From positions 171,430,001-171,494,000 of the forward strand of contig NC_042999.1 in the NCBI RefSeq assembly GCF_006345805.1: a stretch of DNA of 64,000 nt. The letters are read 5' to 3'. The first letter of the stretch is position 1. The number at the start of each line of letters is the position of its first letter. Position numbers and translations under genes: made by a program. Below are positions 37,275 to 51,764 of the stretch, piece after piece. The notes beneath the pieces were generated by a model. The model searched no databases and was not told where the DNA came from. It saw only the letters and a program-made list of their open reading frames with translations. This DNA comes from Octopus sinensis. Its lineage: Eukaryota.

Positions 37275-38603
37275 TTAAGCAATCAAAGATTGTATAAATT
37301 TTTGATGAAATTGTCTTATTTTCTCCAGTTGCTCATGGAGTGTTATTTGATCGAGTGGAAATGTATATTTAAAATGCATACTGTCAGGATTTTCACCAAA
37401 GACTTTACCAGGAACAACATAAATACCTGTAGTTGCGTATAGTTCACAGCAGTAATTTTCCTCGAGATCCAAAGCCTCATTTTCATCAGTAATCCACCGA
37501 CTTGGAAACAGTAATTTAGGAAAAGCACAATGGCCAGCAAATACCTGGCTGCAACTCATATAAGGCTGTAAGTTAAAAAAGTCAACGGTAATTTCAGCTA
37601 AATTTCCGAGTAGTTCTATGAAGTTGTGTCTTTCATTTTCGAATTTTGTAAATGAAGGGTATTTTCTTACATATTTTGGTGCTAGAAAAAGACTTAAATA
37701 GATTTGATGGACAGTAGCCGCGGAAGTAAAGGTAAGGGTGCCGAATTTTGTGGTCAACTTATCCATTCGTAAGCTATCAATGTAACTTATCTGCATACTT
37801 TTGTCACCCTGTGGACTTCGAGCTAATGAAAACAAACACATTAATTGCACAGATTTGTAAATTTCATCCTTTTGTATGAGTGCTTTCCTGGATGATAAAA
37901 ATTTGTTTTTTCTATAAACATCCATTTGTAAATTTTCTATTGCTATAAGCACAATGCCATGATTTTTGGCCACACGGAAAAATATCTCCAGTTCTTTTTC
38001 CGAATATAGGTGACCTGTTGGATATCCCGGATTCTCCAAAAATATACAATTTATCTTGCAATGAGATCCTTCTAGAGCTTTCACAAGTGCTTCTTCTTCA
38101 ATTGTCCATTGATCAGCAGCTTCTGTCAGATAATAGGGGACAGGCAAAAACCCACATATTTCGACTGCTTCCTGAATAATAGGCGATGAGGGATAAGGAA
38201 TTAGAATACCATAACCACTATTCATATGAGCACCTATGAAAAATTTTAAGATACTATTCAATAATGACCATTCATTATTTTCAATGAGAACCTCTTCGTC
38301 TTGTTCCAGATTTAAGGTACCATCTCGTTCTAAAATGTAATTTGTGACATCCTTTCTTGTGAACGGCAGACCGATAGTCTTCGAATAAGTGCCAACACCA
38401 TTTCCTGAAAAATTGCTTAAGTAATGATTTGCCAGTTGTTTTGCATCATCAGAAAACTTAAAAGATTCCGAAAGATCTGAATATATGCAGAGTACGATGA
38501 TCTCGTTTAAATAACTGTATTGAATGTAATCCTCCGTTTGCAGAATAGTATCAAATTTCACTCTCTTTTCAAAGCATCTCTCTTTCTGAGCAACGGAATC
38601 CAT
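37275..38603 (-). CDS. Alanine aminotransferase (GPT/ALT)-derived protein, copy 1; single exon, 442 aa, predicted catalytically dead
   Basis: Colinear with the ALT family end to end: LCIYSDL, GVGTYS..G..RKDV..YILERDG, GILIPYP, YYLTE..W, NPGYPTG, F.S.RKAL, EENYCCELYATTGIYVVPGKVFG, HFKYTFP, FHQKF. The ORF-track start at 38633 is TTG; the first ATG (MDSV) is at 38603. The PLP-lysine position is Arg (codon CGA, 37818-37820). Confidence 0.9.
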   Translation of the reverse strand: MDSVAQKERCFEKRVKFDTILQTEDYIQYSYLNEIIVLCIYSDLSESFKFSDDAKQLANHYLSNFSGNGVGTYSKTIGLPFTRKDVTNYILERDGTLNLEQDEEVLIENNEWSLLNSILKFFIGAHMNSGYGILIPYPSSPIIQEAVEICGFLPVPYYLTEAADQWTIEEEALVKALEGSHCKINCIFLENPGYPTGHLYSEKELEIFFRVAKNHGIVLIAIENLQMDVYRKNKFLSSRKALIQKDEIYKSVQLMCLFSLARSPQGDKSMQISYIDSLRMDKLTTKFGTLTFTSAATVHQIYLSLFLAPKYVRKYPSFTKFENERHNFIELLGNLAEITVDFFNLQPYMSCSQVFAGHCAFPKLLFPSRWITDENEALDLEENYCCELYATTGIYVVPGKVFGENPDSMHFKYTFPLDQITLHEQLEKIRQFHQKFIQSLIA

Positions 38604-39164
38604 AATGTAAAGCAGTTTAATGATACACTCCAAATTTAGGTAGTTAAAATAGCTCCAATAGGTATATTAATTTGTTTGTTATTAGTGTAAAATATTCTCT
38701 TAATTTCAGCCGTCTTAATTTCAGTCTTATCTTTTACTAGATGCCCTACTGAAATATCTCTGACATCGTTCCTCTATAGGCATGTTATATTCATGCTTTA
38801 CTAGTTTATTTCAAGATAAATGCATGTTTACACAGGTTAACAAAGTTCAATGTATTCTCGAGCAGCTGTGTGGTTACTTATCAATAAATGATAACGAAAA
38901 AACAATTGCCAAATACAAATCATAAATAGATAAGTAGATAAAGAGAAAACAATATTCGAACTAGGCAGAAATATGTACACCTCTTACATTGTCATTAAAA
39001 TTCGTCACGTAAGCGATGTTTACAAACCTGAGAGGTCAAAAACCGCAAAGTATTGAAATAAATCAGCAGTATGCTTATCACATGACACTTAAAGTATTCG
39101 CTCTGGATATAATTTATGAACTTAAACTGTTTCTCATCATAGCCTAAAACTATATATATATATA

Positions 39165-39350
39165 TGTATCTATATATAATATGTAAATATATGTATATAT
39201 ATATATATACACACACATATATATATATATATATACATATATATATATATATATATATATATATATATATATATATATATATTATATATATATATATATA
39301 TATATATATATATATATATAGATGCATTTACATGTGTGTGTGTGTGTGAG
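39165..39350. repeat. (TA)n/(TG)n microsatellite
   Basis: Directly visible. Confidence 0.9.
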
Positions 39351-40040
39351 ATTATCAGCAGAAAGGAGATATTTTACATATCTATAATTATATTAATCAG
39401 TTATTTACACCATTCCTCCGTGGGCCTACGCGAATTTGAACTGCTTCGACTGCACACTCTTATGTATTCATCCTCCTGATTCCATTTTGGATACACTTTC
39501 ATCAGGGTCTATTATCTACTGCCATTTGAAGTGAAACTGAGGAATCAGAAAGCTGAGTGAATAAAGTGTTTATCAGGAAGTATTGGTGTTACTAAACATA
39601 CTTGCAGTATCAACAATTCAAGTTTCACATCTGCGAAGTGTGTTAGGTGAATCAATGTAGCGTTAAAATTAGATAGAGTTCGATTAAATGTTTTCATCGA
39701 TTCATTAGTGCTATCAAAATGTATAAACTTTTGCTAATTTCAAGGAGACTATTCTTATTTTTGCATTCAGAGGTATTTAATTAATTTTGATTTATTATTT
39801 GTTTGATTTCACAGCAGTTAGTCTAGTAATTTTGGATATCTAGCTATATTAACTGAAACCCGAATGAGACACTCGGATTTGCTAAGCGAGAATAATTACC
39901 AAAGTCTAACAACGTATTGTTTACACGGGGATCACGAAAGGTTCGCTGTGGTCAGCCGGCATATAAAATCGATTTCAGAGGAAACACAGTAACCGCTGGG
40001 ATTATATATCCCTTTGACTTTATATATTTCAAAGATGGAT

Positions 40041-49858: not shown

Positions 49859-50382
49859 TATATAAATGCACACAGTGAATGAGAGAGAAAGAGTATGTGT
49901 CAGAGTGTGCGCGAGGGAGAGTGAGAGCGAGAGAGACATGTATGCATACATATACAAATATAAATAAATAGATACATCTATATATACACAAACATATATA
50001 TAAATGCAGGCAAATCTGTGTTTGCGTCTAAATATATATTTATGGCCATGTACCTCTCTGTATGCGTAATGTAATATCAAAAGCGTACATATATACAAAA
50101 CGATAAGACAATTTAAATATAGATAATGTACAGGCATTTTATTATAAATCAGAATTCAATCATTTTGTAACAAGTATGTTTGGACGTATGTGAATATCTA
50201 TATATTTATATACGCACGTATATGTGTGTACGTATGTTTGTCTGTGTGTACGTATGTTTGTCTGTGTGTACGGGTATGTATGTGTGTGTGTATTCATGTA
50301 TGTTCGTATGAACGTATATCTTTCTACATACAATACATTTGCATGTATGTAAGTAACTATATACAATTTATCAATGTTTGTT

Positions 50383-50388
50383 TTTATT
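50383..50388 (-). promoter_or_regulatory. Candidate polyadenylation signal (AATAAA) of ALT-like copy 2
   Basis: Same position relative to the stop codon as in copy 1. Confidence 0.5.
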
Positions 50389-50435
50389 GAAAAGTATGAA
50401 TAACAACATAAATGCTTACAGTAAATAGATTGCTT

Positions 50436-51764
50436 TTAAGCAATCAAAGATTGTATAAATTTTTGATGAAATTGTCTTATTTTCTCCAGTTGCTCATGGA
50501 GTGTTATTTGATCGAGTGGAAATGTAAATTTAAAATGCATACTGTCAGGATTTTCACCAAAGACTTTACCAGGAACAACATAAATACCTGTAGTTGCGTA
50601 TAGTTCACAGCAGTAATTTTCCTCGAGATCCAAAGCCTCATTTTCATCAGTAATCCACCGACTTGGAAACAGTAATTTAGGAAAAGCACAATGGCCAGCA
50701 AATACCTGGCTGCAACTCATATAAGGCTGTAAGTTAAAAAAGTCAACGGTAATTTCAGCTAAATTTCCGAGTAGTTCTATGAAGTTGTGTCTTTCATTTT
50801 CGAATTTTGTAAATGAAGGGTATTTTCTTACATATTTTGGTGCTAGAAAAAGACTTAAGTAGATTTGATGAATAGAAGCTGGGGAAGTAAAGGTAAGGTT
50901 GCCGTATGTTGTGGTCAACTTATCCATTCGTAAGCTATCAATGTAACTTATCTGCATACCTTTGTCACCCTGTGGACTTCGAGCTGACGAAAACAAGCAC
51001 ATTAATTGCACGGATTTGTAAATTTCATCCTTTTGTATGAGTGCTTTCCTGGATGATAAAAATTTGTTTTTTCTATAAACATCCATTTGTAAATTTTCTA
51101 TTGCTATAAGCACAATGCCATGATTTTTGGCCACACGGAAAAATATCTCCAGTTCTTTTTCCGAATATAGGTGACCTGTTGGATATCCCGGATTCTCCAA
51201 AAATATACAATGTATCTTGCAATGAGATCCTTCTAGAGCTTTCACAAGTGCTTCTTCTTCAATTGTCCATTGATCAGCAGCTTCTGTCAGATAATAGGGG
51301 ACAGGCAAAAACCCACATATTTCGACTGCTTCCTGAATAATAGGTGATGAGGGATAAGGAATTAGAATACCATAACCACTATTCATATGAGCACCTATGA
51401 AAAATTCTAAGATATTATTCAATAATGACCCTTCATTCGTGTCAACGAGAACCTCTTCATCTTCTTCTATATTCAAGGCACCATCTCGCTCTAAAATATA
51501 ATCTACGACATCCTTTCTTATGAAATCATCGCCAATGGTCTCCGAATAAATGCCAACACCATTTCCTGCAAAATTACTTAAGTAATGTTTTGCCAGTTGT
51601 TTTGCCTCATCAGAAAAGTTACTAGATACTAAAAGATCTGAATTTAAGCAGAGCACGATGATCTCCTTTAAATAACTATATTGAATATTATCCTCCATTT
51701 GCAGGATAGTATCAAATTTCGATCTGTGTTCAAAGTACTTCTCTTTCTGAGAAACAGAATCCAT
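50436..51764 (-). CDS. Alanine aminotransferase (GPT/ALT)-derived protein, copy 2; single exon, 442 aa, predicted catalytically dead
   Basis: EIIVLCLNSDLLVSSNFSDEAK..GIYS..G..IRKDVVDYILERDG aligns with ALT QVLALCVNPDLLSSPNFPDDAK..GAYS..G..IREDVARYIERRDG, and the rest is colinear. The ORF-track start at 51827 is TTG; the first ATG is at 51764. The PLP-lysine position is Arg (CGA, 50979-50981). Confidence 0.9.
   Translation of the reverse strand: MDSVSQKEKYFEHRSKFDTILQMEDNIQYSYLKEIIVLCLNSDLLVSSNFSDEAKQLAKHYLSNFAGNGVGIYSETIGDDFIRKDVVDYILERDGALNIEEDEEVLVDTNEGSLLNNILEFFIGAHMNSGYGILIPYPSSPIIQEAVEICGFLPVPYYLTEAADQWTIEEEALVKALEGSHCKIHCIFLENPGYPTGHLYSEKELEIFFRVAKNHGIVLIAIENLQMDVYRKNKFLSSRKALIQKDEIYKSVQLMCLFSSARSPQGDKGMQISYIDSLRMDKLTTTYGNLTFTSPASIHQIYLSLFLAPKYVRKYPSFTKFENERHNFIELLGNLAEITVDFFNLQPYMSCSQVFAGHCAFPKLLFPSRWITDENEALDLEENYCCELYATTGIYVVPGKVFGENPDSMHFKFTFPLDQITLHEQLEKIRQFHQKFIQSLIA

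Follow-up and report, generated by a model that had tools for sequence, protein, structure and literature searches.

We analysed a 64,000-nucleotide stretch of the Octopus sinensis genome (contig NC_042999.1, positions 171,430,001 to 171,494,000; hereafter the window) that carries two adjoining intact genes, copies A and B, related to alanine aminotransferase (ALT; GPT, EC 2.6.1.2). A and B are likely to belong to a selectively maintained family of ALT-derived pseudoenzymes that would be dead as transaminases, an assignment that follows, at the level of sequence, from homology to an enzyme family combined with loss of essential residues and purifying selection. As found, the family is old and cephalopod-restricted, judging by the members recovered; it is undescribed and is misannotated in databases as ALT1. 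Full-text searches of the literature on cephalopod ALT-like genes and on the protein accessions of A and B returned nothing relevant.

Two intact copies of a compact single-exon gene

Copy A (37275..38603) and copy B (50436..51764) both lie on the minus strand, and each consists of a single-exon coding sequence (CDS) for an ALT-fold protein of 442 aa. They were the only ATG-started open reading frames (ORFs) of at least 150 aa in a scan of window positions 36000-53000, in agreement with the initial annotation, which had described two uninterrupted 442-aa ORFs on the same strand with starts 13,161 bp apart. The two proteins are 90% identical and align with zero gaps; at the Schiff-base position A reads SLARS and B reads SSARS. 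By our own arithmetic, which assumes about 7% stops per random codon, the chance of an open 442-codon frame in DNA of 34% GC is about 1e-15.

DNA similarity between A and B extends over the CDS, about 160 bp of downstream sequence and, more weakly, about 300-400 bp of upstream sequence. The upstream block of A (38604..39011, minus strand) is a candidate promoter; it contains GAATATTTTA, which is TATA-like, at -94 and TACGTGACGAA at -408. Homologous sequence precedes B, the two O. bimaculoides copies and a decayed third copy of the gene, the last at 79% identity. Its counterpart at B (51765..52060, minus strand) carries GAATATTTTA at -57 and TACGTGACGAA at -296 and is bounded by a microsatellite. 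This common upstream sequence in A, B and the dead copy implies that the copies arose by DNA-level duplication of a compact gene of about 2 kb. With regard to the criteria for processed retrogenes, A and B are intronless, their DNA-level duplication took in the upstream sequence, and no poly(A) tract is present at their 3' ends. The 3' flanks common to both copies (minus strand) span 37111..37274 for A, with AATAAA at 37222-37227, 48 nt past the stop codon, and 50280..50435 for B, with AATAAA at 50383-50388.

We considered constraint on the promoter and make no claim to it, because the upstream blocks are homologous even in the dead copy and diverge at approximately the silent-site rate; for the same reason we claim no regulatory constraint on the flanks. 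The upstream motifs of A and B were not found upstream of the distant homologues described below. The distal edge of the shared block (39000-39011 and 52049-52060, minus strand) reads TACGTGACGAAT, which resembles a hypoxia-response or cAMP-response-element-like core. A, B, the dead copy and O. bimaculoides B all retain it, whereas O. bimaculoides A has TACGTAACGAAT instead; since it survives even in the dead copy, its retention may simply reflect shared ancestry.

Copies A and B share the ALT fold and have lost the N-terminal arm

Both proteins match the Pfam family Aminotran_1_2 (PF00155) above the gathering score, with 52-58 bits confined to the N-terminal half, compared with 133 bits over the full-length model for canonical octopus ALT. 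The top solved structure was human ALT2 (3ihj; E 5.7e-46, query residues 29-438 against chain residues 81-495), followed by barley ALT. An AlphaFold2 model of copy A, built on a 58-sequence alignment, reached a predicted local distance difference test score of 86 and a predicted template modelling (TM) score of 0.87, with disorder limited to residues 1-23, and the top Foldseek matches of this model were again human ALT2 and barley ALT (TM 0.82-0.84). On the evidence of these alignments and of the predicted structure, A and B are ALT homologues with a fold-type-I aminotransferase fold. The isoelectric point (pI) of the family is 5.0-5.5, compared with 7.8 in canonical ALT.

The initial annotation had aligned both proteins with ALT end to end, which did not hold: the first approximately 60 canonical residues are absent and approximately 28 unrelated residues stand in their place. 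The lost segment is the arm that carries the NIGD substrate-lid motif. Its columns are gapped in all family members, a loss that had gone unnoticed in the earlier description.

The cofactor site is dismantled

Residue-level alignments recovered all seven motif changes initially listed. Relative to canonical ALTs (numbered as in aspartate aminotransferase), the phosphate loop TTGAS has become ENNEW or DTNEG, the ring-stacking tyrosine motif QYPLY has become SSPII, NPGNPTG has become NPGYPTG (Asn194 to Tyr194), DEVY has become IENL (Asp222 to Ile222 and Tyr225 to Leu225), SxSKG has become SLARS or SSARS, RGGY has become QISY (Arg266 to Gln271) and HFR has become HFK (the substrate-carboxylate residue Arg386 to Lys412). 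In fold-type-I enzymes, Asp222 contacts the pyridine nitrogen of the cofactor pyridoxal 5'-phosphate (PLP), and Asn194 and Tyr225 contact its O3'. When the proteins are aligned with 52 canonical ALTs by HMMER or by MAFFT, the column of the Schiff-base residue Lys258 holds Arg262, so that the proposed loss of the lysine stands for A as well as for B. Both proteins are predicted to be unable to bind PLP or to transaminate.

The arginine codon at the lysine position is CGA in both copies, as had been noted. The accompanying statement that this codon lies at least two substitutions from a lysine codon does not amount to two replacements, since the likely path is AAA to AGA to CGA, with one replacement and one silent change; the original Lys-to-Arg step was probably a single AAA-to-AGA change. 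Arginine is encoded by CGA in O. sinensis, by AGA in O. bimaculoides and by AGG or CGA in distant relatives, a usage which implies that the residue was held through silent changes.

We compared six family members over 169 columns that are at least 95% conserved in 52 canonical (lophotrochozoan) ALTs. All six members keep 42 of the 169 columns and all six have lost 85, the latter including the equivalents of Lys258, Asp222, Asn194, Tyr225, Arg266 and Arg386. At many lost positions the family has invariant new residues (for example E190, Y194, H198, E204, N224, L225, D228, R239, Q253, F258, S263, D276, A356, G357, K412 and P416, as well as the block QIYLS.FL.P). Other former active-site positions vary freely, namely 222 (I, S or L), 271-273 (QIS, HIS, SVC, SVS or SVT), 110-112 and 139-143. 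The loop G71-x-Y73...G78, which in fold-type-I enzymes enters the active site of the partner subunit, is invariant in 58 of 58 aligned sequences.

Both copies are maintained in Octopus

The same B-then-A tandem pair is found in O. vulgaris, where the orthologues are near-identical (A, CAI9720136; B, CAI9720137), and in O. bimaculoides, where the two genes (A at L012:10001-11047; B, XP_014769914, 84%) are 11 kb apart. O. bimaculoides B is intact, and the open frame of A can be followed as far as codon 349, at which point the assembly runs into a gap. The public 272-aa model named 'alanine aminotransferase 1' for O. bimaculoides A is an artefact of this gap, a run of N (L012:11048-11670, CM046603.1).

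The ratio of nonsynonymous to synonymous substitution rates (dN/dS) was estimated between O. sinensis and O. bimaculoides by the Nei-Gojobori method, with bootstrap 95% intervals and Fisher tests against 1. The values were 0.34 for the A orthologues (0.21-0.56, p 2e-5) and 0.41 for the B orthologues (0.27-0.65, p 1e-4), and the canonical intronless ALT of the same species pair, used as a control, gave 0.26 (0.16-0.50, p 8e-6). When random substitution was simulated at the observed divergence, the frame stayed open in 3% and 2% of cases for the two orthologue pairs. The O. sinensis and O. bimaculoides orthologues are separated by zero indels, and O. vulgaris B has one in-frame codon loss. The selective maintenance suggested in the initial annotation is thus borne out by a dN/dS below 1 in both orthologue pairs and by frames that would be open by chance in only 2-3% of cases, and it extends across cephalopods: three Octopus species have an intact pair, and relatives at 35-44% identity carry the same replacement residues.

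The family is old and forms its own clade

An exhaustive HMMER scan of 1.84 billion representative proteins returned three family clusters (E at most 2e-87), followed by a sharp drop to ordinary ALTs at E 8e-46. A single 205-kb contig of the ENA assembly ERZ21867824 encodes two distant members at a separation of 91 kb: P0011, with 44% identity to A, and P0012, with 36%. In the database version of P0012 (436 aa), a gene caller has run through a TGA near the end and translated it as Trp (L014:11300-11311); under the standard code the protein ends at MTMVK after 433 aa and is otherwise intact. Logan assemblies of nine runs (SRR27666060-81) supplied three further sequences, the allelic forms P0004, P0009 and P0010 (42% identical). 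The corresponding contigs are full-length and collinear, and their 5' ends are ragged, lying 30-122 nt before the ATG; the contigs are transcript-like, fitting RNA-seq better than a genomic assembly. Two of the Logan contigs have a fused Illumina adapter at the 5' end: the TruSeq sequence (…AGACGTGTGCTCTTCCGATCT) at L020:1-23 and L022:1-22 is untrimmed-read contamination in public assemblies.

The family thus occurs at 35-44% identity in at least two cephalopods beyond the clade of Octopus and Argonauta, with the replacements NPGYPTGH, ENLQ, HFK and Lys to Arg in common. The canonical ALT of the ENA sample branches outside Octopus plus Argonauta and inside the cephalopod ALT2-like clade; the sampled animal was probably a decapodiform or some other cephalopod that is not an incirrate. 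P0012 keeps the lysine (TPNKS) and the stacking tyrosine (TYPTI) and lacks Asn194, Asp222, Tyr225, Arg266 and Arg386; such a half-dismantled site implies that the site was lost stepwise. An ungapped dN/dS value for P0011 against P0012 was discarded as unreliable, since the two sequences had been misaligned. No orthologue of P0012 turned up in the octopus genome, where the search hit A, B, the decayed copy and the canonical genes and nothing else.

The tree recovers the family as a monophyletic group (100/100 support) whose stem measures 4-5 substitutions per site, with P0012 as sister to the remaining members. The position of the family among protostome ALTs is a polytomy. We also tried to resolve the parent gene, and approximately unbiased (AU) tests rejected neither an ALT2-like nor an ALT1 origin (p 0.31 and 0.20).

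Gene conversion and other ALT-related sequences in the genome

Codons 1-120 group by copy across species, A with A and B with B, with an orthologue dS of 0.17-0.20 and a paralogue dS of 0.29, which places the A/B duplication before the species split. Over codons 121-349, paralogues are closer to each other than orthologues are in both species (paralogue dS 0.05-0.07, with 0.05 in O. sinensis, versus orthologue dS 0.12-0.15), implying repeated gene conversion. The conversion tracts on the minus strand comprise codons 121-240 (A, 37884-38243; B, 51045-51404) and codons 301-442 (A, 37278-37703; B, 50439-50864). Across the 262 codons of these tracts, A and B differ at just 4 nt in O. sinensis, compared with 25 nt differences between A and its O. 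bimaculoides orthologue in codons 121-240 and 25 between B and its orthologue in codons 301-442. In codons 241-300 the A- and B-specific signatures SLARS and SSARS persist in both species. For the divergent N-terminal 120 codons, positive selection between the two copies was considered and rejected, as omega is 0.51-0.55 and does not exceed 1.

We searched the whole 2.72-Gb, 13,516-contig assembly with copy A. About 10 kb beyond the end of the window, on the plus strand and therefore inverted, lies the decayed third copy (G000:C3:171503951-171505716, locus L003:930-2695). At the DNA level it shares 82% identity with A, and SSARS and NPGYPTG can still be read in it. It has accumulated at least 16 stops, 12 alignment gaps and, after codon 45, an insertion of approximately 435 bp that bears a microsatellite, and it is an example of what unselected decay looks like. 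The description of A and B as a tandem pair therefore applies to the two adjoining intact genes, which are members of a three-copy cluster.

Canonical ALT genes sit on other chromosomes than A and B. An ALT2-like gene (G000:C5:45026558-45027799, minus strand; locus L005:1486-2946) is a single exon of 486 codons with all catalytic motifs, and the multi-exon ALT1 (XP_029646883) likewise has all motifs intact. The ALT2-like gene is also single-exon in the ENA cephalopod (locus L023:2001-3452), which implies that an intronless ALT is old in cephalopods. A and B were correctly called intronless, but because the canonical ALT2-like gene is intronless too, this is not a mark of recent retroposition. 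A further ALT-like sequence, nearly contiguous but broken up among three reading frames, lies on a 30.6-kb unplaced contig (G000:C8993:25048-26700; L008, L009). Its identity to each of the two canonical octopus ALTs is 42-56%, and it represents either the relic of an old intronless ALT or DNA from another organism.

Possible roles of the family and competing explanations

On the evidence above, the family kept the fold-type-I fold and lost the N-terminal arm and the residues that bind and activate PLP. We propose that the proteins would act without PLP, through protein-protein or ligand binding. The version that we prefer, still tentatively, is that of a dead partner: each protein would serve as a subunit of a dimer, either with itself or with canonical ALT. 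Fold-type-I enzymes are obligate dimers, and the partner-reaching loop G71-x-Y73...G78 is invariant while the residues that would serve the same subunit are gone.

About equally possible is a neofunctionalised protein in which the PLP pocket has been rebuilt for new catalysis or for binding, without PLP or with a non-covalent cofactor. Approximately 20 active-site and neighbouring positions carry replacements that are invariant in six members despite 35-44% identity, and the retention of the lysine and the ring-stacking tyrosine in P0012 points in the same direction. However, the free variation at positions 222, 271-273, 110-112 and 139-143 fits abandonment better, and the residue constellation matches no known alternative chemistry.

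We consider it unlikely that the proteins are crystallin-like, serving a bulk or structural purpose and being abundant in one tissue such as lens, skin or gland. Cephalopods did recruit glutathione S-transferase (GST) and aldehyde dehydrogenase (ALDH) as lens crystallins, and the acidic pI of the family as well as its tandem duplication with gene conversion, typical of dosage-driven families, would suit such a role. Yet the literature yielded no link of this kind, and the lack of transcript-derived octopus copies in the protein collection speaks against very high expression in commonly sequenced tissues.

A still weaker explanation, and one that is largely refuted, holds that A and B are slowly dying duplicates, whether retrocopies or DNA duplicates, kept free of stops by luck and gene conversion. 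A dN/dS of 0.34-0.41 is not very low, the flanks evolve neutrally, one sister copy is already dead and no octopus transcripts were seen, all of which count in its favour. Against this, dN/dS is significantly below 1 in both pairs, six copies in three species have open frames, the probability of no stop is 0.02-0.03 per pair before indels, of which O. sinensis and O. bimaculoides show none, are counted, and intact homologues at 35-44% identity persist in distant cephalopods in which silent sites are saturated. That A and B are working alanine aminotransferases, as the NCBI and UniRef names and an above-threshold Pfam match would have it, is refuted at the sequence level and has next to no chance of being true: the Schiff-base lysine, Asp222, Asn194, Tyr225, Arg266, Arg386, the phosphate loop, the stacking tyrosine and the N-terminal arm are all gone, the Pfam match covers half the model at 52-58 bits versus 133 bits over its full length, and the genome has two canonical ALTs.

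Several observations weigh against a maintained pseudoenzyme family or against the dimer that we favour for it. Constraint on A and B is only moderate at the dN/dS values given above, and the tree paths of the family measure 2.4-3.1 substitutions per site, compared with about 0.6 in canonical ALT, so that the family evolves 4-5 times faster. The flanks of A and B show an orthologue identity of 0.87-0.89 (0.89 for the upstream block of copy A), approximately the neutral rate of silent sites. A conserved poly(A) signal was rejected as a candidate, as AATAAA is present in both O. sinensis copies and is not kept in O. bimaculoides B. Two word-indexed searches and the exhaustive HMMER scan found no named squid, cuttlefish or Argonauta member among annotated proteins, returning only Octopus proteins and three clusters without a species name. 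In the protein collection, canonical ALT is represented by a transcript-derived (Logan) copy, but octopus A and B are not. The lost N-terminal arm clasps the partner subunit in fold-type-I aminotransferases, which argues against canonical dimerisation. Finally, the absence of PLP binding and of activity is deduced from sequence.

Comparison with known enzymes and pseudoenzymes

Canonical ALT resembles A and B in homology over residues 29-438, in fold and, in the case of the octopus ALT2-like gene, in single-exon structure. A and B differ from it at approximately 25% identity by the replaced PLP and substrate residues, the deleted arm, a stem of 4-5 substitutions per site and an acidic pI.

The model for the idea of a dead partner is SPTLC1, a Lys-less fold-type-I subunit of serine palmitoyltransferase from the alpha-oxoamine synthase subfamily, which pairs with SPTLC2 and supplies residues to the partner's site. 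Like A and B it lacks the Schiff-base lysine and is under selection; unlike them it belongs to another subfamily and has a demonstrated partner. Antizyme inhibitor (a dead ornithine decarboxylase), S-crystallin (from GST) and omega-crystallin (from ALDH) lost catalysis and gained regulatory or structural roles. Their folds differ from that of A and B, and their roles were demonstrated by binding or expression data, whereas A and B are known from sequence.

Ser4 of Serratia sp. ATCC 39006 is a fold-type-I aminotransferase homologue without terminal regions and catalytic lysine that is reported to form a complex with the complete Ser5 (PMC11726168). The hetero-oligomeric Ser4/Ser5 is a bacterial sugar aminotransferase with the partner encoded adjacent; the octopus neighbours, in contrast, are both dead. 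The nearest named precedent is ScAlt2 of Saccharomyces cerevisiae, an inactive Alt1 paralogue kept after duplication, without ALT activity or known function (PMC5960717). ScAlt2 keeps all catalytic residues and binds PLP as a Schiff base (PMC5960717). The cephalopod proteins differ in that they lack the lysine and the rest of the site. Full-text literature searches found no ALT-derived pseudoenzyme with a dismantled cofactor site.

Lys-less ALT-like proteins also occur in fishes (Albula goreensis KAI1889228, stingray XP_072911366 and skate XP_055522038), which have Arg or Ser in place of the lysine and a degraded QYPLY, DEVY or phosphate loop. They are annotated as 'ALT1/2-like' and retain Arg266, Arg386, the N-terminal region and, in some cases, Asn194. 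Since they fall among vertebrate ALTs in the tree, outside the cephalopod clade, their origin is independent of the cephalopod family. Lys-less animal ALT-like proteins independent of the family were P0014 (Albula goreensis), P0015 (Hemitrygon/Hypanus), P0017 (Leucoraja), P0025, P0026, P0030, P0039, P0040 and P0043, with R, S, N, Q, F or D at the lysine position and partial degradation of QYPLY, DEVY and the phosphate loop. Dead ALT paralogues may be recurrent in animals.

Other features of the window

The initial annotation had described most other coding remnants of the window as riddled with stops. This does not apply to everything, as an intact 720-aa hAT transposase ORF and ORFs of long interspersed nuclear element (LINE) type are present; the other ORFs of the window contain transposon domains or nothing. 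The LINE-type retrotransposon (7935-10951, plus strand), which lies in a GC-rich stretch (GC 0.49-0.54), has an endonuclease ORF, by coincidence also of 442 aa, that overlaps a reverse-transcriptase ORF of 672 aa. The uninterrupted hAT-family ORF (14523-16685, plus strand) contains DUF4371 and a hAT dimerisation domain and may represent an element that is young or has been domesticated. Dispersed repeats of two families (75-90% identity) occur at 31517-32106, 42592-43043 and 47883-48330 and at 6572-6973, 18026-18368 and 45767-46144, with copies in the spacer between A and B. Long arrays of (TA)n, (ATT)n and (TTA)n occupy 39151-39320, 42973-43203, 46984-47162, 47721-47860 and 48599-48816.

Implications

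The labels 'alanine aminotransferase 1' and 'alanine transaminase' in NCBI and UniProt lead to ALT miscounts in cephalopod metabolic reconstructions and differential-expression studies; the octopus has two real ALT genes, not four. Few pseudoenzymes stem from metabolic PLP enzymes, and an old, clean family with a dead sister copy as an internal control and a Lys-bearing paralogue offers a tractable case of fold-type-I repurposing.

More speculatively, coleoids might have evolved a PLP-free ALT-derived family before the split of octopods and decapodiforms, with the rebuilt pocket (invariant Y194, H198, N224, L225 and K412) or the dimer interface put to a new function. Candidate roles would be that of a regulatory subunit tuning canonical ALT in the alanine- and opine-based anaerobic metabolism of muscle, or that of a new small-molecule binding protein. 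If this holds true, the cephalopod family and the independent Lys-less fish proteins would together mark ALT as a recurrent source of pseudoenzymes.

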